Part shown: positions 10,573 to 40,590 of the stretch, one piece after another
Numbering within the stretch: the first letter of the stretch is position 1
How the letters are laid out: every line of letters starts with the position of its first letter
Source: Octopus bimaculoides
Lineage: Eukaryota
Assembly (NCBI RefSeq): GCF_001194135.2
Contig: NC_068985.1
Span: 16,352,275 to 16,416,274, forward strand
Reading direction: 5' to 3'
DNA: 64,000 nt
Notes under the pieces: generated by a model
Told to the model about the DNA's origin: nothing
The model's database searches: none
Seen by the model: only the letters and a program-made list of their open reading frames with translations
Program-made: the position numbers and the translations under genes

Positions 10573-10599
10573 CCTATATACTGTTCTAATATTTATTTC

Positions 10600-10818
10600 T
10601 TTATTGCCCACAGGGGGCTAAACGTAGAGGGGACAAACAAGGACAGACAAAGAGATTAAGTCGATTACATCGACACCAGAGCGTAACTGGTACTTATTTA
10701 ATCGACACCGAAAGGATGAAAGGCAAAGTCGACTTCGGCGGAATTTAAACTCAGAAAGTAGCGGCAGACGAAATACTGCGAAGCATTTCGCCCGGCGTCC
10801 TAACGATTCTGCCATCTC
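10600..10818 (-). mobile_element. SINE family A (near full length)
   Basis: Core plus head ending taacgattctgccatctcg. Confidence 0.9.
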
Positions 10819-13496: not shown

Positions 13497-14054
13497 AAAT
13501 CACCGAAATGTGAAAACTACCGACCCTCCCATCTGTTATAACTTTTGTTGTTCTGTTTAATATGTACATAGATTATGCCTCCGTTTAAAAAGACAGCAAC
13601 AGACTGCAGCAATTCACCACATTCCAGAAGTTACTTTAAACATAATGCAAACGGTGCATCNNNNNNNNNNNNNNNNNNNNNNNNNNNNNNNNNNNNNNNN
13701 NNNNNNNNNNNNNNNNNNNNNNNNNNNNNNNNNNNNNNNNNNNNNNNNNNNNNNNNNNNNNNNNNNNNNNNNNNNNNNNNNNNNNNNNNNNNNNNNNNNN
13801 NNNNNNNNNNNNNNNNNNNNNNNNNNNNNNNNNNNNNNNNNNNNNNNNNNNNNNNNNNNNNNNNNNNNNNNNNNNNNNNNNNNNNNNNNNNNNNNNNNNN
13901 NNNNNNNNNNNNNNNNNNNNNNNNNNNNNNNNNNNNNNNNNNNNNNNNNNNNNNNNNNNNNNNNNNNNNNNNNNNNNNNNNNNNNNNNNNNNNNNNNNNN
14001 NNNNNNNNNNNNNNNNNNNNNNNNNNNNNNNNNNNNNNNNNNNNNNNNAGTCTT

Positions 14055-16550: not shown

Positions 16551-17124
16551 NNNNNNNNNNNNNNNNNNNNNNNNNNNNNNNNNNNNNNNNNNNNNNNNNN
16601 NNNNNNNNNNNNNNNNNNNNNNNNNNNNNNNNNNNNNNNNNNNNNNNNNNATATATATAAGAAATGGAGTTAAATTCAGGTGTTCAAATCTTTAAAGTAA
16701 CTGTAATTAGTGAAACGTAATGACGCTTTTGATTTCACTCAAATTTAAATGTATACTCATCTCTTTAGATTCTAACTCTCCCACGAAAAAGAATTCTATA
16801 TGGAACTTCCTCTATTTACCCACCTCTTTACATTCTAACTCTTTTATGAAAAAAATTCTGTGTGGAACTTCTATTTGCTGCCGATAAAATATAATATAGT
16901 GAATGACGGTAAGGAGTTGGAGCACTCGTATAATTTGGAGTTAGGCTTATCTTTCAAAATTTTTAAATGTTCAGCTATCTTCGTCGTTTTTCTTTTTTCT
17001 AACTATAGCTGAGCTGACGCTTTAAGTTCAACTCGTTGTGAGGAAGAATGACTAGAATGTATTTCAAGTTACCTCGTAATAGACAAATAGGTAGCAATAT
17101 CCTGTCAACTCAGAAGCAATGGTT

Positions 17125-22299: not shown

Positions 22300-23144
22300 T
22301 CAATTTTGTCCAGGGATCACGTAAGGGCGTCGATGCTTGATCACATCATTAGCTGAAGATGTACTCGGTTGAACTCTCCTTCTCACTAATTTTTTCAATT
22401 CTTCTCTGAACAACCGACCGGTCAACATGTACAAAACAAAATGAAATGTATTGTCGAAATTTGAAAGTATTATCATCACGTATTTGATTGTCAAATCTTT
22501 GGCTACTTCCATTTCAAGTAAAGGAAATACGAAAGAAGGTGGAAGTGAACAAATCAGATACATTATATTTATGGCCAACACCAAGATAATATTGTCGTTA
22601 CTTTTCAGAGTTGACCATGATTTTGGACGGCGGCACAGAGTAATGATTATAGTAACAGTACATGTAATCCATGTCGGAAGTGAAAATATCTACTATGAAC
22701 GATATTAACAATTAAGAGAATAATAGCAATTCTAATAAGAGTAACAATTTGTGATTTCCAACCAAACTTTTTCATTCGGGCTGAGAACGGTCGTGATATA
22801 GCAAACATTCTCTGGGCGGAAATTGCAACGGTAATCCAAGAGCTGAGCTGACGTATGAAGAAAATTAAAAATTGAATATACTTGCACATTATTTCACTTA
22901 TTACTGATTCCTCCACAAGCATTTTTAATAGCATTTGGTGCGAACATGATACTACAATAATTAAGTCGTTTAAGCAGAACGCAATCAGAAAGATTCCGAT
23001 GTTTATGCTTCTTAGTCTTTTTCTGCAAAGCACTACCAACGATACTGTGTTACCAAAAATACCAATAACAAACATAACTATGGCACTGGTAACCGTCACA
23101 GGGTGCATTGATACCCTCATGTCGAGTGAAGAAACGTCATTCAT
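22300..23144 (-). pseudogene. Single-exon class A GPCR pseudogene (paralog 1), frameshifting deletion in ECL2/TM5
   Basis: ORF 22647-23144 gives TM1-TM4 (GIFGN, CLND, MC, AQRMF). A second frame gives TCTVTIIITLCRR...LAINIMYLICSLP...HFVLY..GRLFREELK. Against paralog 3, about 79 nt (most of TM5) is missing near 22655. Confidence 0.85.
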
Positions 23145-23452
23145 CTTTCACGGTTCGTATCCGGGTCTGGCACTAAATACTACTTTGTCGATATTTATAT
23201 ACCAAGAAACCGAAATTACTGAATGAAGAGCATCAGTCCATCTCGTGTGTGTGTGTGTGTGTGTGTATTTATATGTAAATATATATACACAAAAACGCAC
23301 ACGCACGTATGTAAATGTATATAAATATATATGTACAAAGTTATAATATTATACATAAATATACGTATGTGTATGTATGTGTGTATATACACACACAGAC
23401 ACAAATATGCATATATGTATGTTTATATTTATACATATAAATATATACAGTG

Positions 23453-23454
<2 letters not shown>

Positions 23455-23528
<74 letters not shown>
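23455..23528. repeat. (TA)n microsatellite within a TA/TG-rich low-complexity block
   Basis: Direct read. Confidence 0.95.
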
Positions 23529-23535
<7 letters not shown>

Positions 23536-24536
23536 TTATATATATGTATGAGCATGTAAGAACGACCGTGCGAACCAAAAGGAGAAATGGTGACGAATGG
23601 AAAAACAGGCTCCTTTATTAAACGCGTCACACGGTCGCCACAAAAATATCAAAAATGATAAATATGTTATAATTCTATAACATAGAGAACTTAGAAATGT
23701 GCCAGTAAGATACAAGATAGGACTCAACCGATAGAGATGTATAACTGTAAGATTTATTGGAGCATTAAACTGTATGTCTGTGTGTGAGTGAATATGCGAC
23801 ATAATAAAACACAGTATAAGACTGGCCGTCATGTAAACAAAAGAGTGTGTGCGAGTAATACACGTATGTGAATGTGAGAGATACAAGTATTGAAGTATTG
23901 ATAAGAGCCAGTAACACGTATTGCAATTTACCAGTTCTTAGTTAGAGTACACAGTGGTAAGTGTCTGTATATAAGAAGTTAAAGCGTTAGGGCAGAGCGA
24001 TCACTCGTCGTGATGGTAGGGCTTCAATGCCGGGCCGGGTTCTTGAATACAGATGTTCTTCGCAGGCTGGGTTCTTGTCTGTTAATTTTGTGGTGAGGCG
24101 ATTCACACAAACAGGGCTGAAAAGCTGCGGTTAGCTGTTGGTAGCTTGTGTACGTGTAGANNNNNNNNNNNNNNNNNNNNNNNNNNNNNNNNNNNNNNNN
24201 NNNNNNNNNNNNNNNNNNNNNNNNNNNNNNNNNNNNNNNNNNNNNNNNNNNNNNNNNNNNNNNNNNNNNNNNNNNNNNNNNNNNNNNNNNNNNNNNNNNN
24301 NNNNNNNNNNNNNNNNNNNNNNNNNNNNNNNNNNNNNNNNNNNNNNNNNNNNNNNNNNNNNNNNNNNNNNNNNNNNNNNNNNNNNNNNNNNNNNNNNNNN
24401 NNNNNNNNNNNNNNNNNNNNNNNNNNNNNNNNNNNNNNNNNNNNNNNNNNNNNNNNNNNNNNNNNNNNNNNNNNNNNNNNNNNNNNNNNNNNNNNNNNNN
24501 NNNNNNNNNNNNNNNNNNNNNNNNNNNNNNNNNNNN

Positions 24537-24591
<55 letters not shown>

Positions 24592-24634
24592 TACAAATAT
24601 ATGTAAATACATACGTATTTGAATGACTTGCGTG

Positions 24635-24667
<33 letters not shown>

Positions 24668-25034
24668 GCATGCATACACGTATGTGTGGTCGGGGAGTGT
24701 TTAAATACATGAAACTTCAAAAGGTAAAATGTTAGATTACTTAAACCCTATGGTCTGTAAAATATTATCGGATTATATATTCCTGCTTGATAATGATGTT
24801 GAAGAAAAATCAAGACTGTTTCTCAGTAAGTCATAAGCAGGATTAACGGCTTCCTTGGTGCCGCTAAATCCTTCCTTTCTTCGGACAAACATTCTATTAT
24901 TTAGATCTTGAATACGACTAATTATCAAATACATCTACATTTGCATTTGTGCAATAGATTTTATTTTATATTTAGATAAATTAATATCTTCAACTGTCCA
25001 ATGATACTTTAATAATAATAATAATAATAATAAT

Positions 25035-25185
25035 AAAATTGCACTACTGAGCACTGCACACATCCTACGCAAAACACTTTCAATACAGTAACCATAAGAG
25101 CACCACAGCAAACCACAGCACATACCCAAGGCGCACAGAGCTGCGCTCGGTAGTGAAGTGAAAGCACGTTATAAAAATAAAACTA

Positions 25186-25188
<3 letters not shown>
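25035..25188 (+). mobile_element. Very short 5'-truncated R4/Dong-clade insertion in (TAA)n
   Basis: Near-identical to the 3' end of 25381-26160 (KIALLSTAHILRKTLSIQ* + 3' UTR); (TAA)n on both sides. Confidence 0.85.
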
Positions 25189-25234
<46 letters not shown>

Positions 25235-25322
25235 GCAAAAACAGAAGTGTGCCATTGTTATCAATGGCACTTTTCTTTTTTTGCTTCTATACTTTCTGGG
25301 GGGTAACCTCAATCCTATTAAT

Positions 25323-25365
<43 letters not shown>

Positions 25366-25380
25366 TAATAATAATAATAA

Positions 25381-26160
25381 TAACAAGTAACTGTAGAATA
25401 TAACAAGTAACTGTAGAATATAACAAGTAACTGTAGAATATAACAAGTAACTGTAGAATAATAACAAGTAACTGTAGAATTATAACAAGTAACTGTAGAA
25501 TATGTGGAGATGGACAAGAAACAATAAATCATATTATCTCTGGCTGCCCAGTTTTGGCTAAGAAGGAATATAGTCACAGACACGACAGAGCTGGGACCTA
25601 TATACACTGGAAGCTATGCCAACACTATGGAATAACAACAGAAAAAAGATGGTATAAACACACGCCAGAAAAGGTCACAGAAAACGAGAAAGCAACCATA
25701 CTCTGGGATATGCCAATACACACAGATAGAGAAATTAAGGCAAATAGACCAGATATAGTTGTCAAAGATCATGAAGAAAAAAAATGCTTTCTAATTGATG
25801 TATCAATACCAGCAGATGACAACGTTTCCCTAAAAGAAATGGAAAAACTTTCAAAATACAAAGACCTGGAAATAGAGGTAACTCGAATGTGGAATCTAAA
25901 AACAGAAACAATTCCTATCATAGTAGGTGCTTTAGGTATAATAAAAAAATATTCAGACAAATGCATAACAAAAACACCAGGACTTAAAAATATATATAAC
26001 ATACAGAAAATTGCACTACTGGGCACTGCACACATCCTACGCAAAACACTTTCAATACAGTAACCATAAGAGCATCACAGCAAACCACAGCACATACCCA
26101 AGGCACACAGAGCTGCGCTCGGTAGTCAAGTGAAAGCACGTTATAAAAATAAAACTACTG
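25381..26160 (+). mobile_element. 5'-truncated R4/Dong-clade non-LTR element (CCHC finger + restriction-like endonuclease) in (TAA)n
   Basis: CRICGDGQETINHIISGC, RHD, RPDIVV...LIDVSIP...KLSKY (PD-D/ExK RLE). Open frame to the stop at 26063; flanked by TAA repeats. Confidence 0.92.
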
Positions 26161-26179
26161 AAGAATAATAATAATAATC

Positions 26180-26392
26180 CTTTCTGCTAGAGGCACAAGG
26201 CCTCAAATTTGTGGGGGAGGAGACTAGTCGATTACATCGATCCCAGTGTTTCACTGGTACTTTATCTATCGACCCCGAAAGGATGAAAGGCAAAGTCGAT
26301 CTCGGCGGAATTTGAACTCAGAACGAGGCGGCAGACGAAATACCGCCAAGCATTTCGCCCAGCGTTCTAACGATTCTGCCAGCTCGCTGCCT
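26180..26392 (-). mobile_element. SINE family A, full length, (TAA)n on both flanks
   Basis: Head ggcagcgagctggcagaatcgttag (A box) ... gagttcaaattcc (B box) on the minus strand. Confidence 0.9.
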
Positions 26393-26439
26393 TAATAATA
26401 ATAAGAAGAAGAAGACTGAAAGAGGAGGAAAAGTAACTA

Positions 26440-27960
26440 GCCATGTCATGGATCGGCTATCGTAATGCGTCCGATATGATCCCACATTCTTGGATTATGG
26501 AGTATATGAAACTGTTTGGGATTGCATCGAATGTTGAGCGATTGCTCGGAAAAAGTATGGCGAATTGAGGGACAAACCTGACAGCATACGGAAGATGTTT
26601 AGGGACAGTAGAAATTAGGAGGGGCATCTTCCAAGGGCACTGCCTGTCCCCACTGATCTTTGTACTGTACTTGATACCACTAACACTGAGTCTGAGGAAA
26701 GCAAAAGCTGGGTATGTATTCAAAAGCCGCCAACAAAAAGTTATTATAACAAACCATTTGTTATCCATGGATGACCTCGAACTTTATGGTAAAGATGAAG
26801 CCCAAGTCAGTTCCCTCGTTGATACGGTGTATACCTTCAGTGCTGATATCAGAATGGAGTTCGGACTGAGAAAGTGTGGTGTGTTAGTCTTGGAGAGAAG
26901 TAAAATCAAATGTATAGACAGGCTAACGATACCGTCGGGGGAGGTTATGAAGCAGATAGAAGAGACGGGCTATAAATACTTGGAGATTTAGGAAATGGAT
27001 AAATTGATGGAGAAAGAAATGAGAGAAAAATTTAAGGTGGAGTACTTGCGCAGACTGAGACTGATCCTTAAGTCGAAATTAAACGGATGGAATAAGATCG
27101 AAGCTATCAACACCTGGGCGGTTTCACTCCTTAGATATGGAGCAGGGGTAATCGCATGGACAGTAGACGAACTAAACAGCTTAGACAGAAAGACAAAGAA
27201 GTTACAAACTAGATATGGGTCATCCCACCCAAAAAGTGACACAGACAGACTGTATGGACCACGAAAAAGAGGGGGAAGAGGACTTATTGGATGCAAACAC
27301 AGCATTAGAGCAGAAGAAAACAACATCGCTTGGTAGGTAAAAAATGCCACAGAACCGCTATAATTAGAAGTAAGAAGGATTTGTTGTGGGACTTTAACAT
27401 TCAGATTGACATAGTAATAGAAGCTAGAAGGCCTGATTTAGTAGTAGTAGATAAAGAGAATAGAAAGTGCCAGATAATTGACTTTACAAACCCAAATGAT
27501 GAAAAAATCAATATGAGAGGTATAGAAAAAATAACAAAGTACTAGGACTTAGCTATTGAATTACAGAGACTATGGAGAGTGCGGGTAAAATGTATCTCAA
27601 TAGTTATAGGTGCATTGAGAACTATCCCTAAAGATCTGAACAGATGGATAGAGAAAATAGGCATAAAACCCAGTTTAGTACAGCTCCAGAAAACAGTGTT
27701 ATTAGGGACAGCTAAGATACTTAGAGAGAAAAGAGCAGATTGTAGGGGCGTAGAATTTCCAAACGAAGAGAGAATGGAAGATCCGGATGATAATGAGTAC
27801 CTTGGGATACTGGAGCTGGTCAATATCTTGCATAGAGAAATGAAAGACAAGCTCATCACTGCATATTTCAAGCGCCTCAAACTTCACTTGAAATCAAAAC
27901 TCAACTCAAGGAACTTTGTGACTGTCATCAACATATGGGCTATTGTTGTAGTCCGCTACT
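26440..27960 (+). mobile_element. Older, internally deleted/chimeric R4/Dong-clade element (RT + RLE fragments)
   Basis: GIFQGHCLSPL, NHLLSMDDLELY, YKYL, RRLRLILKSKLNGWNKIEAINTWAV, HPKSDTDRLY, then WDFNIQ..RPDLVV..IIDF, followed by a second RT piece (YLGIL...LKSKLNSRN). Confidence 0.85.
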
Positions 27961-28339
27961 GTGCATTTACTAAAATGAGCTCCGGTCTTAGAGACTGTGT
28001 GACAAGTACTAAATGGCAATCAAAACCAGCTCCACATGATGAAAGGGAGACAGTCTCAAGAAGCAAGAGTTTTCCAAAGTTGACATGCCTTAAATGAAAA
28101 GGACAGACATAGTGTCGAGAGATAAGAAGACAGTGGTGAACATGTTTCTACTACAATAGGTGTCGTTAGCGCGACGATTGTCCTTCCCTAGCTCCAGCAG
28201 CCAAGGAACATGGTAATATACATAAAGAATAGAACATATTTATGGCCTAGAAAATTTTCATAAATTAAACAAAAAATGGAGCTAAAAGAAATAATTACAC
28301 ATAAAACAAATATATACACATATGTGTGTGTGTATGGAT

Positions 28340-28340
28340 A

Positions 28341-28432
<92 letters not shown>

Positions 28433-28506
28433 TACATACATACATATATATGTATATATACATACATACATACATATATGCATATATATACATACATATT
28501 TATATA

Positions 28507-28555
<49 letters not shown>

Positions 28556-28660
28556 GTATATATATATATATATATATACATATATATACGCATACATATA
28601 TATATGCATGTATATACGTGTGTGTATGTATGTATACATGTATCTATGTATATATGTATG
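28340..28660. repeat. Compound (TA)n/(GATA)n/(TACA)n microsatellite
   Basis: Direct read. Confidence 0.95.
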
Positions 28661-29085
28661 TATGTATGTATGCACATTAATGTTTGCCTATATGCTAAGT
28701 TACATGTCAATACAATTTGAAGCAACATCTGGATTCATCAGATTATGTTCAAAGACTGCAATATGCAGTGGGACTTCATGACTTTTGGTTCACTCTATAC
28801 ATAAACGGAGATTATAAAACAGAATAAGAAACAATGACAACAAATCTATGAACAATCTATCAATCACAAAGAGAGAGAGAGAGGGGGAGGGAGGGAGTGA
28901 GGTGGGTGGTAGTAAAGATATGTGCATAAGGATAAAATTAATGAAAAATAGAAAAGGTGCAGATAATTACAATGATAACAGTAATGAGATTATAAGTGTA
29001 GATTCTATGATGGTGGGGAAATACAATATATGTAAAAATACGAATAAAATAAAACTGAATTCAAAAGAAAACAGACCCTAGTGAT

Positions 29086-29149
<64 letters not shown>

Positions 29150-29820
29150 NNNNNNNNNNNNNNNNNNNNNNNNNNNNNNNNNNNNNNNNNNNNNNNNNNN
29201 NNNNNNNNNNNNNNNNNNNNNNNNNNNNNNNNNNNNNNNNNNNNNNNNNNNNNNNNNNNNNNNNNNNNNNNNNNNNNNNNNNNNNNNNNNNNNNNNNNNN
29301 NNNNNNNNNNNNNNNNNNNNNNNNNNNNNNNNNNNNNNNNNNNNNNNNNNNNNNNNNNNNNNNNNNNNNNNNNNNNNNNNNNNNNNNNNNNNNNNNNNNN
29401 NNNNNNNNNNNNNNNNNNNNNNNNNNNNNNNNNNNNNNNNNNNNNNNNNNNNNNNNNNNNNNNNNNNNNNNNNNNNNNNNNNNNNNNNNNNNNNNNNNNN
29501 NNNNNNNNNNNNNNNNNNNNNNNNNNNNTATCAGCTTTGTTTGGAAAATGAAGGAAGGTAGTTTGAACATTTGCGAACACGCAGGAATGAGAGAGAACAT
29601 TAAATAATTCTAAATGAGAATAAATAATCGTTTCTACAACAATTTATTTTCCTGAATTTACTTTAACTTTTTAGGATTGTATGTATATCAATAAACATCT
29701 ACTTGAACACAAAATGCATGAGTACTGAGAAGTCAAAGAGTGAGTACATCTTTTTGGGACACCCTGTATATATATATATATATATGTGTAGAAATACTCC
29801 TTGCAAGCACGTAAGGTGTA

Positions 29821-32440
29821 CCGTATTTTACTCGGCTATAAGTCGCACTTTTTTCCCCTGAAATTTTCACCTAAAGTTGGAGATGCGACTTATTAGCACA
29901 TCCTATAAAAAAAAAATGTTCACATATTTTCTAGGTACAAGCCACGTCTGAAGTTCCGACACTTAGAATAACCAAAAACACCCGATTCGCTAATTCCGAA
30001 GCCGAGAAGTATACGGAAGACGATCTTTAGATATTTCTTTATATATTTCTTGGTGGAGATGGAGTATATGTAATCTGGGTATACCCCCACTTTTAAATTT
30101 TGTTTTTTTTTACGGAATCCTATGTTTCAGACCATGGAGAATCCGATTCTGGAAAAAAATTTTCAAAAATCTCAATTTCAAAATTTCGATCCCCCCCCCC
30201 CGGTTTTTATATAGATCCACAGGGTAAACCTAACCCTAACTCAAACCCTAACCCTAACCCTAACCCTGACCCTAACCCTAACCCTAACCCTAAACCTAAA
30301 CCTAACCCTAACACTAGTTTTGTGAGATTTGGCTGTTATTTCTAGCATGTAAATAGCCTGCTTGGTGGGGGGAGGGGAATTGAAATTTTTCAAAAATTTT
30401 TTTTTCAGAATCGGAATCTCCATAGCCTAAAACGTGGGATTCCGTAAAAAAAATTAATAAATAAGGGGGGGGGAGGTTCAGATTACATATAGTCCATCTC
30501 TACCTATTCCTTTACTTCTATTAATATGAAATAAACGATTTAATTTTTAAAAAGTTTAATGCTTGTTTGTTTTTGCACTGTGCCTTTTATTTGCTAACAT
30601 GAAGAGATGCCGTGTTATTTGTTAACATGAGGCGAAAGAGAAAGTCGTATGATATCACTTTCAAGCTGAAAGTTGCTGAATACTCGAAATTGCATTCGAA
30701 TCGAGCTGCAGAAAGCGAATTCGGAGTCTCGGGGAAAATGGTCAGGGATTGGCGTTCGAAAGAGGAGAAAATGAAATCAGTTGACATCAAATTGTTACAG
30801 AAAATTGGGATAGGAATGAGTCCCAAGGAGGAGATGGAGACTATTTTGAGAGACTGGGTGACTGAACTACGCACTTGGCGTCACAAGAAACCTCATTAGA
30901 TTTCGGGCTCTCCAAGTGACTAAAGAACATGGTATATCCGACTTTAAAGCATCTCCTGGCTGGTGTACGAGGTTTATGAAACGCCACAATCTTACGCTGA
31001 GACAGCGGACTCATATTGCATAGAAATTACCCGCCGACGTAGAGAACAAAGCTGATTCCTTCCAACGGTATGTAATAAGACCTACGAAAAAGTCACGAGT
31101 TTGCCTTGGAAGCAATCGGTAATATGGACAAGACATCCCATTATTTCGATATGGTTGTATATCGGACAGTCGACGTTAAAGGGAAAAACTACGGGGAGTG
31201 ACAAGGCTCACTTCACCGCAATTTTGGCTTGTGTAGCTGACAGTACGAAACTTACCCCGGCTATTGTTTTCAAAAGAAGGACTTTCCCGATAGTGAAGTT
31301 TCCGAAGGGCATGATGGTGTACGTTCATGAGAAAGGGTGGGTGGATGAAACCGTATTGATGAACTGGTTAAACAACGTGTGGTTCAAGTGCCCAGGGGCT
31401 ATGCTAAAAGTCGCTTCTTATATGGGATATATTCAGGGCTCATCTGATCGACAGCATAAAAAATAGATTAAAAGAGTATCGTACCTACCAGGCTGTGATT
31501 CCAGGTGGATGTACATCTGTGCTTCAGCCACTCGACGTGTCGGTGAACAAGCCTTTTAAGGTGAACATGCGTGCCAAGTGGAATGAATAGATGATTAATG
31601 GTGACAAGGAAATGACAACGGTTGTAAACTTAAAACGCCCTGACCTCAAGATTGTTTGCCAGTGGGTGATAGATTCATGGGCTGAAATACCGTGTGAACT
31701 TGTGGTGAAATTATTTTTGCAGTGCAGGATCTCAAATTCCATGGATGGTACGGAAGACGATGAGCTATATAATGACATCGTCTGTGCTAGAAATGTTAGC
31801 CCCAGTGCTTCATCAGTTAAGGAAGATTAGACAAGTGAAGACGCAGATTAGGGTGTATACGACGAGACCATCACAACCGAGGAGTTTTACCAGTTATTTG
31901 GTGAAAGTGATGATGAAAATGATGATTAGTATAACTCGATTTTTCCTTCATTTAATCTTCGATTTTTGTCACAATATTTTATACACTTCCTTACAATTTA
32001 AAACAGTTTATTGTATTTTTTTCCAACCGGAGCACGTATGACTGCATGGTTTTGTGTGTCAGATGCTGCAAAAGTGTCCTAATAATGAAAGGGCATAAAT
32101 CAAAAAGTAAAGGGAAAGTATCGAGGCAATTAAGTTTCAATACGATAAACAAATCAACTAGAGTTATCAAGGATAAAATTTTACATTATAAACAACGGTT
32201 TCTAAAATGCATGGACTTAATGGGATAACAGTTGTTGTAAGTCATCTTCAGCTTACTGAAAGCTCGCTTACCGAACAACAACTATGTCAGCACGATTCCT
32301 AATCAAACTTTGCTCTCCAACATCAGAAAAGTTGCTGCAACATCAGAAAAGTCGGGTCAATGATAAAATTCCCGATTTGAACCTTGTAATTCAGGGGTGC
32401 GTCTTGTAGACAAGGGTGTTTTATAGTCGAGTATATACGG
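29821..32440 (+). mobile_element. pogo/Tc2-type (POGK-like) DNA transposon, decayed
   Basis: TA|ccgtattttactcggctataag ... tatagtcgagtatatacgg|TA termini. Brinker-type DBD KRKSYDITFKLKVAEY...VRDWR, CENP-B-like HTH and DDE_1 fragments (GNMDKT, KGWVD, QPLDVSVNKPFK). Confidence 0.88.
30053..30502. mobile_element. ~450-bp foldback with ~150-bp arms enclosing a (CCCTAA)n array, inside the pogo element
   Basis: gagatggagtatatgtaatctg...tttacggaatcc...ggagaatccgattctg mirrored by cagaatcggaatctcc...ggattccgtaaa...cagattacatatagtccatctc; array at ~30228-30311. Confidence 0.8.
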
Positions 32441-33303
32441 TACTCTCGCATAAGATGCCCTCTTATTTTACAAGTATATTTGGTGGGGGAGGGAACAAAT
32501 TTCGTATGTTTCATCACACACCTATTGAAAGGTATTTTAAAGTAGTTTTGTAGGGAAAATGCACGATTTTGTGAATATAAACAAAATACTGTAAGAGTAT
32601 TCTGGAATACAGTATGAAACTGTAAATGCATCATATATAAACTACATTATACGAGTATTGTAGTTCAACCTTATCTTTATTCAGATCATTTGTGTAATTG
32701 TTTATATTTGGCCAAAAACTGCCATACAAAATCTAAAACACGTTTTTTTTTTTAATTATTATAATGCTTTGAGTTACTGCGAAGGGCCACCAGGGTAGCA
32801 GACCATCACTATGATTTTGTCATCTAGTCACTACAAATAGCTGACAGGCGGATGAAAGTTTAACATTCCTTATATCTTTCTTGGAGAACTTTTTTTTTTT
32901 ATTTAGGTAATTAAAAAATGTTTCTTAAAGGTAAAGCAGTCATTAAATAATGTAATAAGGTGTAGGTTATGTAAAATGAGATAATGTGACCTCTTCACAT
33001 AACTGCTAACGTTTTGTGCCAACGTATTGCAGGCGATTGTTCTTAAATTTGTGTTCACAGATTGTGAAAGTTGGGCTTGTTTTCAATATTGCATTATCAG
33101 TAATAATAATTAAGTCTGGCGAATTTATGCACATCCTGCTCCCTACAAAACTCGCCTTCCGTGCCTAAAATGGCCGCATTAGACGCAGAACAATTTTTTG
33201 ATACATTCAAAATTTAAAGGGCGCATCTTATAAACCGGCGAATACAGTAGGTATGTATTTATGTATGTGGACAGATAGATAGATAGATAGATAGACAGGA
33301 AGG

Positions 33304-33334
<31 letters not shown>

Positions 33335-34105
33335 GGATGTTGATATAATTTCAATTGCTGAAATATCGTTATAAACTAAGCGTGTACAAAACGATAGCAT
33401 CATATCGTTCTCTCGTTACATAAATGTGTATAGAAAGGTAAGTATTCAGAAATGATGGCAATATTGTTCATGTTCAAGTGTTCGGTATTATCAATTTACG
33501 TGAGAAGTGAATAATCTCCGCTCTTTGTCCTTTAAGAGTGACAAACAAACAGTTTTGTTGTTTATGGTTTGTTTGTTTTTTACCGTATCGTAGTACTTAT
33601 GTTGCTTCTTTGTGTTTTTGAGTTCGAATCCTGCTAAAATTGGCTTTGCTTTTCATCCTTCCGTGGTCGATAATTCAAAGTATCAGTTCAGTATTCAAAT
33701 TGATATAATCGATTGTTCTCTTCTCTAAAGATGTCTGGTGCGTATGTAAGAAATCGTTATTTCTTTTGACAATTCTTCCAAAATATATATATATATTTTT
33801 TTTTTTGCTTCATTTATTTCTGGTTGTCTCAACGATTTCAAAATATATCAGAAAGGTTAAATATTTTCAATTGTTAAATCTCACAATTTGGTGAATTAAT
33901 TTTTTTTTTTTTTTTTTTTTCGAAATCATGAACACAAAAATGTTTTTACATGAACTTTTTAATAAACCTATTAAGAAATTTTTTCCAGATAAAATTAATT
34001 AAAATATGTAACTGATTTTCCAAACTTATTGAATGTAATTTTATCTCCTTGCAGTAAGTGATTCAAAAAGATAAAAGGTAAATTAGTTGTCTTGGAATTA
34101 AAATT

Positions 34106-34972
34106 TCATGCGTTTATATTAACTGCAAAAATATTTATTTTATCTTTTCTTTTTAGTAAAAGTTTCATTTCTTCTCTGAATAAACGACCAGCCACCATGT
34201 ACAAAACGAAATTAAATGCGTTGTTAAAGCCAGATATTAGAACATAAATATTGTGTGAATTTTCAAACTTTATTTTACTGGCGAAGGAAAATATGATTGA
34301 AGGCGGAAGAGTACAAATTAGAAACATTATATTTATTGCCAACACCAAATAAACCGTGTTATGTTGGGGTGATGTGTCTCTGGAAATGGGACGGTGGTAT
34401 ATAGTGTTGATGATGATAATGTTACATATAACCAATATTATAGCTGGTAAAAAACTATAGATCGTACTATTAAGTATGAGGTTTATCAGATTGTTCGAAT
34501 TAATATATATCTCGTGTTTCATGAAGACAAAGCTGTTATAAACAATGCTAATGATTATTAGAACCCCAGCCATTATAATGAGACTGATGATTTGGGGTTT
34601 ATAACCCTTAGGAAGTATCCTGAGAACTGAAAATGGTCGGGACAAAGCAAACATCCTGTGGACTGTAATCATAACTGTAATCCATGAAGAAAACGCCCGG
34701 GAAAAGTTAGCAATGATCCAAATGACTATGTTTAAGTTTTTATTTATATTTTCTCTTCGTATGTTGAATGTTCCAAGCATTATGTCGAGGAGTGTGGTAT
34801 GAAGTACGATTAGATCATTGAAACAGAGTACAATTAAATAGAGTCCAATATTCATACTTCTTAGTTTTTTTCTACAAAGCACTACCAGAGAAAAAATGTT
34901 GCCAAGTGTACCGATGACAATCATAACTGCTGCAATAACGATTGACGCTTGATTTAGCCGAGAACTATCCAT
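34106..34972 (-). CDS. Single-exon class A GPCR (paralog 2), FMRFamide-receptor/srw-like, candidate chemoreceptor
   Basis: 288-aa intact ORF with seven hydrophobic segments; GTLGN (TM1), CFND (TM2), VHRMF (TM3), YSFLP (TM5), FLICTLP (TM6), NFVLY (TM7), GRLFREEMK (helix 8). Confidence 0.9.
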   Translation of the reverse strand: MDSSRLNQASIVIAAVMIVIGTLGNIFSLVVLCRKKLRSMNIGLYLIVLCFNDLIVLHTTLLDIMLGTFNIRRENINKNLNIVIWIIANFSRAFSSWITVMITVHRMFALSRPFSVLRILPKGYKPQIISLIIMAGVLIIISIVYNSFVFMKHEIYINSNNLINLILNSTIYSFLPAIILVICNIIIINTIYHRPISRDTSPQHNTVYLVLAINIMFLICTLPPSIIFSFASKIKFENSHNIYVLISGFNNAFNFVLYMVAGRLFREEMKLLLKRKDKINIFAVNINA

Positions 34973-37319
34973 AACTATCAGATATAATGAACAGAGTTGT
35001 TCTTTTCTGCTCAGTTTTTGTGTTAACGCTTTCTTTTGATCCGTATGATTGCAGAAATTTTACTATGCTTGTTGGTATTTATACGGAAGTAAAACGAAAA
35101 TAGGAAAACAATTATAGACTGGAAAAATTAATTAAAATTCGATATGATATTATTAGCAATCGTATATCATACAACACAAAATACATCCTAATACATAAGT
35201 AGTTTCAGGAAAACTTTTTGTTAGAGATCAGAAGATATACATGGAGAGGTATCTTCATTTACTAGTTCTTTACTAGGTCTTTATTTTTACTTCGTTTTTT
35301 TTTTTTTCTTAAGGATAATTAGAAGAATTATGCTTATACCAATTCATTATTATCTTCAAAGGAACAGGCAGTATTTTTTCTTCCTAATTTCTTTTTAATA
35401 CTCTCAGTATTTTTTCTTTTCTTAACTACAATACCTAACTTATTGAATGAGACATCTGCTCGTCTAATCGATGACAATTCGTATTAAAAATCTTTTTCTT
35501 TCTATGATACAAACATAAAGAACTGTTTTAGCATATATGTGGTGACTTTATGGCATTGTCTTTGTTCCGTTTATAATGACTAAGTTATTAATTTCCCCTG
35601 CGTTATTAAGAGCCATTTTTTATCAATGTGCTCAGGGTACTAACATGCTATCTTAAAAATATCGCTTTGTCAGTGGCATGAGATTTGCTATATAGGTATT
35701 ATTCAGAGTGTATTTATGCATTTATGCGTAGAACTAAAAAGGTAAATGGCAAAGTACATGAAACTGAGAAAGTCCAATGACTGTTAAAAGTAAAAAATAA
35801 AAAATAAAAGACAGTGTCATCATCTGTAGCGGATGAAAAAATGGAGTCAGGTCCTTTCTCCAAGAATCTAAATTTAGCCAACTTTCATGCAAACGGATTA
35901 GTACATAACCTATTGCCACAATAATAATAATAATGAGTATAGGCCCTTATTTAATGATCCATAAATGCTTTCCTCCCCCTGTGCTTTCTTTAACACATTC
36001 TTGGTCAAGTGGACAGTTGACTTACAAAACTAAGCAAGTTTTTCCTTTTGTAGTCCTTTTATTTGGTTGTTTTATCCTTGCGCATGTTTATATATATCTG
36101 TATATATATGTATGTAAGCATCTATGCATGTGTGTATATATGTATATTCCTAGTATTTTGTAGGAATTAGCAATTATGTTTTCTACCCAATGGAAATTTC
36201 AAAATATTAGAATGAAATATTTAGACAGCCAGAACACATCGTTACAATATAGAAAATTAGTTAAGAATTAATTGAAAGATAGGTAGGGAACCAACTTTGC
36301 CAAATGCCAAAAATTTGTCGCCGTCAATTCACGTTGCTTATTTATAACTTTTTTTGCTTGAGTTACACCGTTCTAGCATATATATATATATATANNNNNN
36401 NNNNNNNNNNNNNNNNNNNNNNNNNNNNNNNNNNNNNNNNNNNNNNNNNNNNNNNNNNNNNNNNNNNNNNNNNNNNNNNNNNNNNNNNNNNNNNNNNNNN
36501 NNNNNNNNNNNNNNNNNNNNNNNNNNNNNNNNNNNNNNNNNNNNNNNNNNNNNNNNNNNNNNNNNNNNNNNNNNNNNNNNNNNNNNNNNNNNNNNNNNNN
36601 NNNNNNNNNNNNNNNNNNNNNNNNNNNNNNNNNNNNNNNNNNNNNNNNNNNNNNNNNNNNNNNNNNNNNNNNNNNNNNNNNNNNNNNNNNNNNNNNNNNN
36701 NNNNNNNNNNNNNNNNNNNNNNNNNNNNNAAAAATAAGGTACTCAGATATCTGGATGGTTGTACATTTACAGATTTTTATTAATATGTCACATGTTTTTA
36801 TAAATTAGCGCTTGCATCTATTCTTGTAGATTCTCCAGATTTAATTTTTCTTCAGAGGATTTGTCTCTTTTTATAGTAATATTGAATGTGTAGGGGTGGA
36901 GAGAGATATATGGGATAGTAAAAGAGGGTGAGGAATGGGGGGAAAGTGAGAGAGTGTGTGTGTGTGTGTATCTGAAAGGAGTGTCAATGGGAAAGAGAAG
37001 GAAAGGTGAAAGAAGAAAATTGCGTTTACAGCTGGTCAGTTCTTTCAATGACAAGTTGATTCTTGGCGTATTGCTATCTCATGTACAATAATTTTTTACG
37101 TTTTTTTTTTTTATCTACTTACATGAATGTTTACTTTCACCGGGTCTCATTTTGTGTATGTTCCGAATTTAGATTGTTCCTAGTTTTTCATTAGCTCTTC
37201 TCCTCTAAATTAAATGAATTGTACTATATGAACCAAACCTGTAGCTATTTTCTAATTCACAGTAAATAACACTTTTTTATTTCTACCCGGTTTCGCTTGG
37301 GTATGTCCTTAATTTATAT

Positions 37320-37560
37320 GGTATGTCCTTCTTCAGCCAGCTGGTCATGCTACTTCAGGCTGATGACGAGCAAAAACTCAGAAACATGTCCCTGAATGCA
37401 AGCTAGGCTGGGTGGAGGAGCTTGTCTCCCCCTCGTAAACGTAAGGACACAGGAAATGTGTCAAGGCCGACAGGAAGCGGTCCAGCTTCCTAGGGCTAAA
37501 TAGCAGTAGTATATTCCCTTATTGGGACTGTCACATTAAGTTGACAGTATACAACTACTT
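37320..37560 (+). mobile_element. Penelope-like/retrozyme-type terminal repeat remnant
   Basis: Carries a minimal hammerhead motif. Its distal part (cttcctagggctaaatagcagtagt...gacagtatacaactac) recurs as the arm of the 47841-47996 palindrome. Confidence 0.55.
37354..37396 (+). ncRNA. Minimal type I hammerhead ribozyme motif
   Basis: ttcagg-CTGATGA-c-gag(caaaaa)ctc-a-GAAA-CATG-TC-cctgaa: 6-bp helix I, full catalytic core, short helix II, palindromic ACATGT helix III, GUC cleavage triplet at 37388-37390. Confidence 0.7.
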
Positions 37561-37795
37561 TATCGCATCACTACTGCTTAAGTCTCTCTGAGAGATTTAG
37601 AAATGTATTATTTCTAATATTTATGTGTGTGTATCCATGTATTTTTTCATTGTGTACAAATAACACGGAAAAATAAATAAATATTTACCAGGGTAGCAAA
37701 AATTCATATAAGTACGAAGGGCGTAACGGCCTACTTATAAAGGTAGAAATTCCAGGGTTTAGTGAAATGTTTTTGTATAACATATATAAATAAAT

Positions 37796-37893
37796 AAATG
37801 GAGTTAAACGCAGGTGTTATTCAAACCTTTATACTTCCGACATATGTCCCGAAAGTATAAAGATTTGAATAGCACCCGCGTTTAACTCCATTT
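37796..37893. mobile_element. 98-bp palindromic MITE
   Basis: aaatggagttaaacgcaggtgttattcaaacctttatactt mirrored with 3 mismatches around gacatatgtc; partial copy near 16661. Confidence 0.75.
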
Positions 37894-39711
37894 ATATATA
37901 TAGCTGAAGGATTAAAATTAATCAAAGGACATACTAAGTATATCTACCTGCTGGAAATAACAATCAAAACTCTTATTTAAATCGCTGAAAAAAATTTTAT
38001 CCTTCAGTTATTTAATGCTTTTTTTTTTTTTGAGCCTGCAGTCGCCTATGTTATTGATTCTGTTATTATCATTTTTAATTGTTACACTAGATAATAACAG
38101 AATCAATAATATCTTCGCAAATATTTTCTCCTGAATTATTTGTTCCGTATTGAAATATATATATACATACATACNNNNNNNNNNNNNNNNNNNNNNNNNN
38201 NNNNNNNNNNNNNNNNNNNNNNNNNNNNNNNNNNNNNNNNNNNNNNNNNNNNNNNNNNNNNNNNNNNNNNNNNNNNNNNNNNNNNNNNNNNNNNNNNNNN
38301 NNNNNNNNNNNNNNNNNNNNNNNNNNNNNNNNNNNNNNNNNNNNNNNNNNNNNNNNNNNNNNNNNNNNNNNNNNNNNNNNNNNNNNNNNNNNNNNNNNNN
38401 NNNNNCTTTGACAATCCCGGAGCGTATTGAACTTATTTTGTGCGTGACTTTTTGCCAATCCTGTATTAATTGAAAAAAGTTCGAAATAGCCACTACTCCT
38501 AGTTTCAAAGACCTTACAAGCTTCATTAACGATTAACAGTTCTTAATGGTGTGTGTCTCAAAGAGTTCTGACGGATTCGGAACCAAGCTGCCAATATAGA
38601 CCTTTCCGAGAACTTCTTACTCGTTGGCGTTCGCTTCAGAAAGTTATATTACCATTTGTAAACTGAAATTCAGAAAATAATCTGCTATTCTTGATTAAGT
38701 TTCTTTACATCTCATTTGTTAAACTCTTTCTTCGAATATAACACTTCAATTTTTTTTTTATGTATATAGTATCTCTGGGTAATTTCCTCACTGTCTTATA
38801 TTCTAAACATTGCTAATTTTTTACACTTATACGTGTACATTGTTACACATATACTTTAAAATCTTCTCAACACTAATTTGGATAGTACATGGGAGTATGT
38901 GCTTTCTTGAAATCTAATAATAATTAAACATGTCCAGAATTATCTCCTGTATTTGAAGAAATGGTTAAACTATTAGCCGTTGAACAGATGCTGTATTTTC
39001 TCTTTCGCAGATGAACAAATAATTCATGTTCACTTCTAAATAGGCGTAATATTCTTTCCAAACACACCTTCCGACTGGTATAACATGGCAGACGGACGAA
39101 GCATACACTACATCGAGAACTTTGAGTATTTGGACATAGTCCTAAAGAAACTCATATTCGTAAAACAAATAACGTCGTTTACTGACCTTTTGACATGTCC
39201 AAATCAACATCAATTTTTTTTTATCAACAGAAGACAAATATTCCATTTTGAAATGCGTTTCTCCACTGGAGATATTTGTCTTTTGTGCCACCGGTGTTTT
39301 GTTTTGCTTTGTTTTTTGCGTGTTGTTTTTTCTTTTGTTTTCTTTTCTTTTTCTCTTTGCCGGCTTGGTTAAGATGAAATGACCATTTGATGGGCAATGG
39401 AACTGTAGTAAGACTTGCCGGGGGATTATTTCTTAAATAAAATTATTTTTAAAATATACGATGGTGAAACATTTCATTTGACCTTTAGACGATTATTCAA
39501 ACGCAAAATAATTTGAAAATAAATTTCAGAACATTCTAAATTGTATTCATATTATGTTTTTATTAAAATTCCTTCCATAAAAGAATAATTTACTACATCT
39601 GATAGATTTACACATCCATATTAAATAGATATTTCACATTATCCAATTATTTACTTGTTCAAAAACGAATGCAATAATAAAGGGTTAACAGCGAAATCAT
39701 AGGATTCTCAA

Positions 39712-40590
39712 TTAACTGGTCATAATTGTAAAAGTACTTGGGCGTCGTTTTCTTTTCAGCATTGTTTTCATTTCGTCCCTAAATAGACGCCCTGCCAAAA
39801 TGTACAAGATGAAATTGAACACATTATTGAAGCTACATAGTAAGATTAAAAAGGATTTTGCTGAATTTGCCATGTTTGATCCATTAGATAAGGCTAATGC
39901 GACAGAAGAAGGAAGAGTGCAAATCAAAAACAATATGTTTATTGCCAGTATCATATAAACTGTGTGGTTATTTACTTGTGAAGTTGACTGTGATGCGTTT
40001 CCAGCGATAGAACGGCGACAGAGTGTAAATACAATAATAATGTTACATGAAATCAAAATTGCAGCCGGAAAAAAGCTGTACATGACGCTTGCAAAAAACA
40101 CAGTCACCGTTTGGCTCGGAGTAACACAACGTCCATTCTCGAAGTAAAAATATCTGCTGTAAACTATGTTAACGCTTGCTAGAATAGCAAGCATTATAAT
40201 GATATTTATAATCTGGGGTTTATAACCAGTCAAAATTCTCGCCCTGGTTGACAACGGTCGAAACACCGCAAACATCCTGTGGACTGTAATAATGACGGTA
40301 ATCCAAGAGGAAATTTCCCTGAAAAAATGAATAAAATAACGGGAAAAACTACAGTTATTTTCAAACATATACACTAAGCTTATATCCAATGGCACAACAT
40401 GGTTATTGAATAATGATGTGTAGAGGACGAGTAAATCGTTTAAACACAGTGCAATCATGTATAGTCCTATATTCATAGTTCTCAGTCTTTTCCTGCAAAG
40501 TACTACCAGAGAAAATATGTTACCTATTGTACCAATAACCAACATTATTATTGCAGCGTAGGTGGTAGTTAAATTGTAAGAAGCCTGCAT
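39712..40590 (-). CDS. Single-exon class A GPCR (paralog 3), FMRFamide-receptor/srw-like, candidate chemoreceptor
   Basis: 292-aa intact ORF with 7 TM segments; N-terminal NLT sequon, GTIGN, CLND, NNC (C3.25), VHRMF, ENGRC (ECL2 Cys), YSFFP, FLICTLP, NFILY, GRLFRDEMK. Confidence 0.92.
   Translation of the reverse strand: MQASYNLTTTYAAIIMLVIGTIGNIFSLVVLCRKRLRTMNIGLYMIALCLNDLLVLYTSLFNNHVVPLDISLVYMFENNCSFSRYFIHFFREISSWITVIITVHRMFAVFRPLSTRARILTGYKPQIINIIIMLAILASVNIVYSRYFYFENGRCVTPSQTVTVFFASVMYSFFPAAILISCNIIIVFTLCRRSIAGNASQSTSQVNNHTVYMILAINILFLICTLPSSVALALSNGSNMANSAKSFLILLCSFNNVFNFILYILAGRLFRDEMKTMLKRKRRPSTFTIMTS

Follow-up and report, generated by a model that had tools for sequence, protein, structure and literature searches.

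A tandem cluster of short intronless class-A GPCR genes in Octopus bimaculoides, with a possible role in chemoreception

We describe three paralogous intronless class-A GPCR genes that lie within 18.3 kb, all on the minus strand, of a 64-kb window of the Octopus bimaculoides genome (the whole stretch of DNA that was analysed). It is very probable that they form a functional, fast-diversifying cluster of orphan receptors in birth-and-death. The fuller explanation that we consider best, a lineage-specific cluster of minimal-size intronless class-A GPCRs that serves chemoreception, is put forward tentatively.

Gene models, assembly and spacers

A sequence-only reading of the window had described three same-strand paralogs of about 290 residues without coding introns, two intact and one dead, and the ORFs and tblastn searches confirm this description. 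Paralog A (39712–40590, minus strand) and paralog B (34106–34972, minus strand) are intact single-exon ORFs of 292 and 288 residues, with 47% identity to each other (E 2e-75). Paralog C (22300–23144, minus strand) is a pseudogene, present as two ORF pieces (22647–23144 and 22300–22584). Each ORF is one exon without interruption, and an in-frame stop lies within the 30 codons ahead of its ATG. The stretch ahead of TM1 is ∼6 residues in A and longer in C. The intracellular motifs quoted as retained in that reading (LCRK[RK]LR..NIG, RMFA..RP and GRLFR[DE]E) are all found in A, B and C alike. No fourth copy was detected in the whole window by tblastn with A and B as queries.

The assembly contains four runs of N, all in spacers and at least 1 kb away from every ORF. 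Three of the four directly adjoin a microsatellite: 24161–24536, located 1017 bp upstream of the ATG of C, has (AT)n at its right edge; 29150–29528, in the C-B spacer, has (AC)n at its left edge; and 36395–36729, 1.4 kb upstream of the ATG of B, has (AT)n at its left edge. The fourth, 38175–38405, follows AT-rich simple sequence at its left edge and lies 1.3 kb downstream of the stop codon of A. No reading frame is crossed by a gap, and the uncertainty is confined to spacer lengths. Colinearity with contigs from a related species extends over A (window 41075–39134) and B (36107–33311), including the flanks. The Logan contigs look genomic, since their ends are microsatellites and they run colinearly with intergenic DNA.

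The description of the spacers as rich in transposable elements applies to the C-B spacer, which contains two decayed remnants along with numerous microsatellites. The first is a reverse-transcriptase fragment of a non-LTR retrotransposon (26437–27333, plus strand), whose stop-masked translation matches RVT_1 (8.3e-08) at about 26464–26910, and which has related retroelement C-terminal ORFs on both sides (25554–26063 and 27579–28097). The second is a pogo/Tigger-type DNA transposon with HTH and DDE portions (30612–31466, plus strand; BrkDBD 7.1e-07, DDE_1 2.4e-07). The description does not extend to the B-A spacer, which contains two of the gaps and no recognisable TE protein.

Receptor fold and divergence of the outer half

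The products of A and B are complete 7TM receptors, and profile searches uphold their earlier assignment to the rhodopsin-type GPCRs. The best Pfam match is Srw (PF10324; gathering cut-off 22.2 bits), which is exceeded by A (52.7 bits, 5.2e-14), B (46.3 bits, 4.7e-12) and the first half of C (39.0 bits); its best stretch covers profile positions 3–152 of 319, mainly the N-terminal half. Srsx is also above its gathering score in A (3.3e-07) and B (4.8e-06; 26.6 bits versus 24.1). The 7tm_1 cut-off of 30.5 bits is exceeded by A (39.3 bits, 6.6e-10) and the first half of C (38.1 bits), whereas B, at 22.5 bits, falls below it and could therefore be missed by 7tm_1-based pipelines. The AlphaFold2 model of A (pLDDT 90.2, pTM 0.88) consists of seven helices and H8. 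A Foldseek search with this model gave 1235 PDB matches at E≤0.001; the best 50 of these 1235 are all class-A receptors, and the best matches are class-A peptide receptors with a TM-score of ∼0.75.

The class-A core is retained, with several of the canonical microswitches variant. D52, R105 and P227 are invariant in a 12-sequence family alignment, and the latter two also across 104 relatives. In A, HRM occupies the DRY position (40273–40281), CTLP lies in TM6 (39910–39921), NFILY in TM7 (39802–39816) and GRLFRDE in helix 8 (39772–39792), all on the minus strand. The DRY position is likewise HRM in B and is QRM in C; the acidic residue is lost only in A/B/C and the D copies of a more distant species (see below), and more distant members have ER. 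The CWxP position reads C[T/S]LP, without the Trp, and at NPxxY the copies have NF.LY, except for HFVLY in C. Family-wide, distant intact members included, the Trp of TM6 is absent and NF..Y present, NF..Y being nearly invariant in the 104-sequence set. NF..Y takes the place of NP..Y in the Srw/FMRFamide-type receptor group. Both cysteines of the TM3-ECL2 disulfide are missing in B and in its ortholog.

Divergence is greatest on the extracellular side, as the sequence-only reading had noticed. A and B share 25% identity in the outer (extracellular) half versus 66% in the inner (intracellular) half (Fisher p 1e-11), and B is 70% and 90% identical to its ortholog in the respective halves (p 6e-5). 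The conserved half faces the G protein and includes R3.50, ICL1, the inner halves of TM3 and TM7, and helix 8. The extracellular, pocket-forming half diverges rapidly from paralog to paralog and, in the case of B, from species to species. We do not observe in the loops the strong purifying selection that had been named as evidence against an odorant or taste receptor cluster: omega in the outer half of B ranges from 1.23 (NG86) to 1.95 (ML), which is not significantly greater than 1 (bootstrap CI 0.65–3.1), so that relaxed constraint fits this half as well as positive selection. Omega is 0.18–0.27 in the inner half of B. In A, omega is uniform at ∼0.4 and does not rise in the outer half.

Selection, turnover and lineage

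Intact one-to-one orthologs of all three genes are present in a related species: P0001 for A (87% amino-acid identity, no CDS indels), P0003 for B (79% identity) and P0006 at locus L006 for C (333 residues). Whole-gene omega relative to these orthologs is 0.4–0.5 for A, 0.6–0.8 for B and 0.72–0.91 for C. Relative to the related species, the flanks show a divergence K of 0.12–0.20 and 6–12 indels each, compared to no indels and no stops in the coding sequences of A and B; in simulations at K=0.16, the probability that an open frame survives neutrally was 0.01 or less. Selection thus keeps the reading frames of A and B open. C differs from its intact ortholog in the DNA alignment by one frameshifting deletion of 82 bp (junction between 22669 and 22668), which eliminates most of TM5 and the last part of ECL2. 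This single deletion inactivated C; both halves are otherwise open, and coding divergence equals that of the flanks.

These data also bear on whether the cluster as a whole is decaying, with A and B strongly relaxed, on their way to becoming pseudogenes like C, and without a current specific function. Such a course would accord with the whole-gene omega of 0.4–0.8, with the loss of the disulfide pair in B and of the DRY acid and toggle-switch Trp, and with the one copy already dead. We nevertheless consider it improbable, given the intact frames of A and B beside their indel-bearing flanks and the low inner-half omega of B. Furthermore, the missing TM6 Trp and NF..Y do not indicate decay, because they are common to the whole family, including its distant intact members.

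The lineage-specific expansion proposed earlier is supported by the phylogeny. A, B and C group together with a bootstrap of 98, and join with 98 a second group, D1 and D2 (bootstrap 100), a same-strand tandem pair ∼9 kb apart that was duplicated independently in the more distant species. One other species has at least four family members on three contigs. At E≤1e-30, the family has 11 representatives in 1.84 billion proteins, and those members of the subfamily with a known source organism are from octopus only. The tandem array is thus supported as a product of lineage-specific duplication. Birth-and-death, also proposed earlier, is seen on a small scale, as lineage-specific duplications and one pseudogene with an intact ortholog. 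Turnover is slow, since the A/B/C duplications are old (dS >1).

One-to-one orthologs were found only in one closely related species, and the search of the 1.84 billion proteins gave none outside cephalopod-type sequences; orthology of this kind across molluscs had been named beforehand as counter-evidence. The next matches beyond the family are uncharacterised proteins of Owenia and Paralvinella and inconsistently auto-named proteins of Haliotis. These annelid and gastropod matches reach at most 28% identity and 118 bits, compared to 126–265 bits within the family. That the genes are simply orthologous to some conserved neuropeptide receptor of bilaterians or molluscs (e.g. FMRFamide, neuromedin-U or opioid-like) and happen to be duplicated in tandem is accordingly very improbable in our view, even though the best Pfam and PDB matches are peptide-receptor-like and “neuromedin-U receptor 2-like” is the automatic name of one Haliotis relative. 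The same Haliotis cluster also carries the auto-name “kappa-type opioid receptor-like”, and these names therefore do not imply orthology; omega is also high. Membership of a conserved neuropeptide-receptor orthogroup is largely refuted, since the nearest non-cephalopod relatives are uncharacterised and so remote, with orthologs confined to a close relative and omega at 0.4–0.8.

The subfamily is best explained as part of the large stock of orphan, peptide-receptor-like (Srw/GPR139-like) receptors in lophotrochozoans. Srw is a nematode chemoreceptor family regarded as a derivative of FMRFamide/peptide-type receptors. As the nearest relatives with names come from annelids and molluscs, the likeness to Srw more likely reflects shared peptide-receptor-like ancestry than membership of the nematode expansion. 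The vertebrate orphan receptor GPR139 (PDB 7vug and 9m42) is the solved structure that the family profile matches best (E 4.8e-26), with a Foldseek TM-score of 0.75 and 21% identity; this similarity is remote, other class-A peptide receptors are nearly equal by fold, and orthology is not implied.

Known receptor systems and candidate roles

Tandem, cephalopod-specific expansions of class-A GPCRs (groups 1 and 2) were described by Ritschard et al. in 2019 (PMC6408891). Nath et al. catalogued lineage-specific class-A expansions (LSEs) across 19 cephalopod genomes in 2025, grouping the genes as full-length, truncated or pseudogene, and proposed them as candidate chemoreceptors (PMC11886862). To call the present genes a candidate new family, as was done at first, is therefore an overstatement; the cluster is a real, ordinary and modest addition to the lineage-specific cephalopod tandem class-A clusters already described. 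Like A, B and C, the published expansions are rhodopsin-type, cephalopod-restricted, of peptide-receptor-like ancestry, arranged in small tandem clusters, and marked by raised omega or signals of positive selection (PMC6408891; PMC11886862). Group 1 also includes single-exon genes of 825–924 bp that are arrayed along one strand of O. bimaculoides Scaffold18646 (PMC6408891). Two O. bimaculoides relatives of our genes, A0A0L8HN02 and A0A0L8ICK4, are both missing from Table S2 of that study, and the examined portion of its O. bimaculoides sheet contains no matching gene pair (PMC6408891). Expression of these expansions is mostly outside the brain (testes, gills, and a mixture of nervous with non-nervous tissues) and is not specific to sensory organs (PMC6408891).

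The candidate chemoreceptors AcCRb and AcCRc of Aplysia californica (Cummins et al. 2009, PMC2700072) provide a second comparison. They are likewise intronless and rhodopsin-like, their N-terminus is short and the Arg of the DRY position is conserved, and their genes are clustered 9–13 kb apart, with pseudogenes and, between one pair, a non-LTR retrotransposon. The AcCRb signature at the TM3/ICL2 border, WITAFVTFERCLCIA (PMC2700072), is similar to SSWITVIITVHRMFAVFRP of the octopus family, a partial resemblance of motif only (WITV.IT.(H/E)R...), compared by motif rather than by tree. With 38 and 24 full-length genes, the families of Aplysia are larger, and their proteins are longer (319–433 residues) (PMC2700072). 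The working criteria of the same study were 7TM topology, clustering, fast evolution, a multigene family and expression in chemosensory organs. The octopus genes are clustered by this standard, with three copies in 18.3 kb and a tandem pair in another species, and they evolve rapidly, with ortholog omega of 0.4–0.9 and non-cephalopod identity of at most 28%.

The most likely single role of these receptors is perhaps, by analogy, broad-sense chemoreception, in which they would detect external chemical cues or those of conspecifics, although we place our confidence in it somewhat below even. A ligand would bind in the outer pocket and the conserved inner half would activate a heterotrimeric G protein; duplication followed by divergence of the pocket would give each copy a different ligand specificity. 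By the same analogy, the odorant or taste receptors proposed in the sequence-only reading are a candidate identity.

Several observations speak against a chemoreceptor role. The subfamily is small compared to the tens to hundreds of genes usual in odorant receptor repertoires; one-to-one orthologs of all three genes are kept in a related species, with slow turnover; omega is uniform along A; and the outer-half omega of B does not significantly exceed 1. Testes, gills and mixed tissues dominate the expression published for cephalopod-specific class-A expansions (PMC6408891), cephalopod class-A LSEs are reduced, and the known contact chemoreceptors are ionotropic (PMC11886862).

A competing reading, which we rate as possible at about one chance in three, is that the genes encode receptors for endogenous, fast-evolving signals, such as reproductive or other lineage-specific peptides, acting through the same GPCR mechanism without environmental cues. 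Divergence of the pocket would then result from co-evolution with a genome-encoded ligand or from subfunctionalisation of paralogs. Descent from peptide-receptor-like class-A GPCRs is consistent with such receptors, and a small family with retained one-to-one orthologs suits dedicated ligand-receptor pairs. Conserved neuropeptide receptors, however, generally have omega far below the 0.4–0.8 seen here, the protein search gave no ortholog outside cephalopod-type sequences, and the ORFs of the window include no candidate ligand gene. Also in favour of such receptors, the published expansions fall within a clade of neuropeptide receptors from molluscs, and one group, in tandem clusters, is almost testis-specific (PMC6408891); a place of our genes in group 1 or 2 would be hypothetical, as the two named relatives are missing from the table.

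Chemoreception remains our preferred, tentative reading, and it has a more specific and unlikely form, in which A, B and their relatives are a cephalopod-restricted minimal (∼290 residues) subfamily of metabotropic receptors for odorants or pheromones in the olfactory organ or lips of octopus, with a positively selected pocket half. This form stresses the losses: those of the toggle-switch Trp and the TM7 Pro throughout the family, of the DRY acid in A/B/C and D, and of the disulfide in B. The chemotactile receptors of octopus (van Giesen 2020 and Allard 2023, as cited in PMC11886862) are, like the present candidates, lineage-specific cephalopod expansions with a proposed or demonstrated chemosensory role. 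As nAChR-derived pentameric ligand-gated channels, they differ in fold and mechanism from A, B and C, which Pfam and the AlphaFold2 model identify as 7TM GPCRs, in keeping with the distinction drawn from the start. If the specific form were true, the cluster would represent a system running alongside the suckers' ionotropic chemotactile receptors, and would include the long-sought metabotropic receptors of octopus.

Three intronless receptor genes and their surroundings

The ORF listing and tblastn agree that the window holds exactly three related genes, as the sequence-only reading had proposed, and place all of them on the minus strand. Paralogs A (39712–40590, 292 aa) and B (34106–34972, 288 aa) are intact and share 47% protein identity (E 2e-75), and paralog C (22300–23144) consists of two open pieces, 22647–23144 and 22300–22584. 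Each ORF is a single uninterrupted exon whose ATG has a stop codon in the same frame a short way upstream, in keeping with the claimed lack of coding introns. The motifs singled out in that reading, LCRK.LR..NIG, RMFA..RP and GRLFR.E, were found at the expected places in all three copies. Canonical polyadenylation hexamers lie on the minus strand at 39564–39569 for A and 33958–33963 for B, ∼145 nt past the stop codons (+148 and +143, respectively); these fit short 3′ UTRs but are weak evidence in AT-rich DNA. A public protein of 205 aa (P0002) is identical to residues 1–205 of A and ends exactly before a splice-donor-like GTAAAT (window 39976, codon 205); thus, one gene model on record for A has probably been cut short or mis-spliced.

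Four assembly gaps (N runs at 24161–24536, 29150–29528, 36395–36729 and 38175–38405) are all 1 kb or more away from the nearest ORF. A microsatellite directly adjoins three of them and AT-rich simple sequence precedes the fourth, so that these gaps are ordinary breaks of the assembly in simple repeats. None of them interrupts a reading frame, and independent contigs of a related species run colinear with both intact genes together with their flanks (window 41075–39134 for A, 36107–33311 for B). The possibility that a gap conceals a piece of a gene or fuses two frames was rejected, since no ORF touches one, and the uncertainty from the gaps is confined to spacer lengths and gap contents. Four more gaps are found in the first 20 kb of the window (8924–9638, 10912–11560, 13661–14048 and 16551–16650).

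The description of the spacers as rich in transposable elements holds for C–B; B–A is mostly unannotatable and contains two gaps. The C–B spacer is rich in microsatellites and contains a reverse-transcriptase fragment (∼26464–26910, RVT_1 8.3e-08) and a pogo-like transposase remnant (30612–31466, BrkDBD and DDE_1). Two plus-strand ORFs, 25554–26063 and 27579–28097, are diverged copies of one retroelement C-terminal ORF that bracket the reverse-transcriptase fragment (here 26437–27333). They share the motif ...ILWD..I.TD..I...RPD.VV.D... and neither has a Pfam match; the arrangement suggests nested or duplicated LINE pieces. The same spacer contains a 20-bp minisatellite, ATAACAAGTAACTGTAGAAT, at 25380–25503 (6 copies, 96% match), adjoining (TAA)n and (AAT)n, and an interstitial telomere-type repeat, (TAACCC)n, or (TTAGGG)n on the other strand, at 30225–30316 (15 copies, 88% match), ∼300 bp upstream of the pogo-like remnant. 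Just beyond A, at 42083–43047 on the minus strand, are two adjacent PIF1-like helicase ORF fragments (PIF1 2.2e-24, Pif1_2B 8.7e-15), a kind of helicase found in Helitron-type elements. A further reverse-transcriptase fragment (2110–2733, minus strand, RVT_1 8.9e-10) is far from the cluster. Scanning the window for Rfam families and tRNAs gave no matches.

Relatives and independent tandem duplications

Word-indexed homolog searches, even with a profile, recovered few members of the family, and an exhaustive HMMER search was needed. Among 1.84 billion representatives, 4980 matched at E≤0.001 and only 11 at E≤1e-30, so the specific subfamily is small. Intact orthologs of A, B and C (87%, 79% and 71% aa identity, respectively) are present on contigs of the sequencing runs SRR11869384, -390, -391 and -394. 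The flanks on these contigs are colinear with the window at 82–89% nucleotide identity and the contigs end in microsatellites; they therefore look like genomic DNA of a closely related species. Two further members from O. bimaculoides are both uncharacterised: XP_014770947.1 (P0009), a single exon on a 96.9-Mb chromosome whose interspersed repeats match those of the window at 88–94% identity, and A0A0L8ICK4 (P0154).

A second tandem pair, D1 and D2, was identified in the long-read assembly ENA ERZ21867824 (locus L010, ctg117151l, 695–1624 and 9995–10909). Both copies are intact and intronless, lie ∼9 kb apart on the same strand, and share 62% identity with each other and ∼43% with A. No repeats are shared between this locus and the window at blastn E<1e-10, which argues that the species is distant. 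The assembly also contains more distant singletons (P0011 and P0012) on separate contigs. In a bootstrapped NJ tree, each of the three paralogs groups with its own ortholog at 100%. The A+B+C group (98%) and the D1+D2 group (100%) are sisters at 98%; as these are separate sister clades, tandem duplication occurred independently in the two lineages. The duplications that produced A, B and C are old (dS>1, compared with ∼0.14–0.24 for the split from the related species). Together with the loss of C described below, the independent duplications lend substance to the proposed birth-and-death evolution, albeit only on a small scale.

The next-best named matches are annelid (Owenia, Paralvinella) and gastropod (Haliotis) proteins, which are either unnamed or carry conflicting automatic names within one 90% cluster (“neuromedin-U receptor 2-like” versus “kappa-type opioid receptor-like”). 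Such names would point to a conserved neuropeptide receptor, as would the structural neighbors of A described in the next section; we consider this identity very improbable.

Receptor fold, selection and the loss of paralog C

The best Pfam family for these proteins is 7TM_GPCR_Srw (A 5.2e-14, B 4.7e-12, first half of C 7.5e-10), followed by 7tm_1 and Srsx; B scores under the 7tm_1 gathering threshold and over the Srw and Srsx cut-offs. AlphaFold2, given a 104-sequence alignment, modelled A with high confidence (pLDDT 90.2, pTM 0.88); the model consists of TM1 (residues 7–31), TM2 (42–68), TM3 (77–110), TM4 (124–145), an ECL2 hairpin, TM5 (160–195), TM6 (201–235), TM7 (242–266) and helix 8 (268–278). 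Foldseek places the model among class-A peptide receptors (CCK1R, orexin and opioid receptors) with a TM-score of ∼0.75, and the best solved structure for the family profile is GPR139 (4.8e-26).

The family alignment shows no variation at D2.50, R3.50 and P6.50. The DRY triplet is HRM in A and B, QRM in C and QRT in D1 and D2; the CWxP position reads C[T/S]LP and the NPxxY position NF.LY. The TM6 tryptophan is absent throughout the family alignment and NF..Y is nearly invariant among the 104 relatives, so that both are family traits rather than damage, and decay was rejected as the origin of these variants. The HRM, QRM and QRT triplets were likewise rejected as signs of decay, since the copies that carry them have intact frames in at least two species. 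Both cysteines of the TM3–ECL2 disulfide are retained in A, the ortholog of C and the D copies, and are absent from B and its ortholog (locus L003). This looks like coordinated loss in a working receptor.

Selection was compared between an outer half (the N-terminus, extracellular loops and outer half of each helix) and an inner half, split according to the model topology. For A versus its ortholog, whole-gene omega (dN/dS) is 0.40 by NG86 and 0.53 by ML, with 0.42–0.61 for the outer and 0.36–0.46 for the inner half. The corresponding values for B are 0.58 and 0.78, with 1.23–1.95 (bootstrap CI 0.65–3.1) and 0.18–0.27, and those for C are 0.72 and 0.91, with 0.68–0.86 and 0.64–0.87. The intracellular half of B is thus still under purifying selection (omega ∼0.2) despite the loss of the disulfide. 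Between A and B, amino acid identity is 25% in the outer half versus 66% in the inner half (Fisher p 1e-11), which substantiates the suggested extracellular divergence with intracellular conservation. The same asymmetry is seen in all paralog pairs and in the B and C ortholog pairs, and is absent from the A ortholog pair. These receptors combine a conserved signalling half with a fast-diverging ligand half.

The flanks of A and B have each accumulated 6–12 indels (K 0.12–0.20), while both coding sequences have no indels and no stops; the simulated neutral survival of an open frame is ≤0.01 at K=0.16. A and B are clearly under constraint. An origin of the ORFs by chance or from transposable elements was rejected on the basis of the Pfam matches, the AlphaFold2 fold and frame conservation against the neutral expectation.

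Paralog C differs from its intact ortholog locus by a single 82-bp deletion in the DNA alignment (window junction 22669/22668), which takes out the last part of ECL2 together with most of TM5 and causes a frameshift. The halves on either side are otherwise open, and the intact ortholog (P0006, 333 aa) is present in four sequencing runs. C is thus a young pseudogene, provided that the assembly is right, and the count of two intact genes and one dead one stands. Its coding sequence and its flanks diverge at the same rate. Even before its death, the C lineage was the most divergent of the copies. In both C and its ortholog (locus L006), His replaces Asn of the NP..Y-equivalent motif (HFVLY, window 22429–22443), and the residue preceding R3.50 is Q in one of the two species and H in the other. 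Decay of the cluster as a whole would account for C but has the open frames of A and B against it, and we regard it as unlikely. Overall, the cluster is lineage specific and arranged in tandem; its functional members are orphan class-A GPCRs, and one copy is a recent pseudogene.

Possible role and place among cephalopod receptors

The receptors would act through ordinary GPCR signalling, each paralog with its own ligands. Chemoreception in the broad sense, as the sequence-only reading had suggested, is a plausible role for the cluster, although we put it forward tentatively and at somewhat less than an even chance. Lineage restriction, clustering, intronless structure and high omega speak for it, as does analogy with the AcCRb and AcCRc genes of Aplysia, which are close analogues of this cluster and are expressed in chemosensory organs (PMC2700072). 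The small size of the subfamily and the stable retention of orthologs speak against it. So does the fact that those cephalopod-specific class-A expansions examined to date are expressed chiefly in testes, gills and mixed tissues (PMC6408891). Class-A lineage-specific expansions are also generally reduced in cephalopods, and the known contact chemoreceptors of these animals are ionotropic (PMC11886862), which counts further against chemoreception. That the genes encode receptors for endogenous, fast-evolving ligands is only somewhat less likely than chemoreception; the fast-diverging ligand half would suit such ligands as it would external ones.

Clusters of this kind are already known. In 2019, Ritschard et al. 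reported class-A expansions specific to cephalopods that include tandem clusters and show positive selection; among them are same-strand arrays of single-exon genes of 825–924 bp (PMC6408891). Across 19 cephalopod genomes, Nath et al. (2025) reported class-A lineage-specific expansions with tandem arrangement and pseudogenes, and proposed them as chemoreceptors (PMC11886862). The UniProt identifiers of two named relatives are absent from the expression table of Ritschard et al. Within their Table S2, part 1 has E. scolopes rows only, and in part 3, which belongs to the O. bimaculoides sheet, no two genes match the expected sizes and spacing. Since B is sub-threshold for 7tm_1 and the two named relatives are missing from the expression table, existing catalogues may have overlooked part of this subfamily.

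The octopus genome study of Albertin (2015) reportedly counted “Aplysia-like” candidate chemoreceptors among the octopus GPCRs. We know of no receptor identified so far for distance chemoreception in cephalopods (olfactory organ, lips). In the literature covered here, nAChR-derived contact receptors are the only deorphanised cephalopod chemoreceptors cited. The cluster by itself changes nothing yet, as it is small and its kind has been catalogued before; its worth lies in clonable candidates rather than in a discovery. A and B, both intact, fast evolving and restricted to cephalopods, make a short list of candidates whose expression could be mapped and which could be screened for ligands, and as single exons of ∼870 bp both are easily cloned. 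Of the two, B deserves more interest for its sharp contrast in omega between outer and inner halves and its loss of the disulfide.
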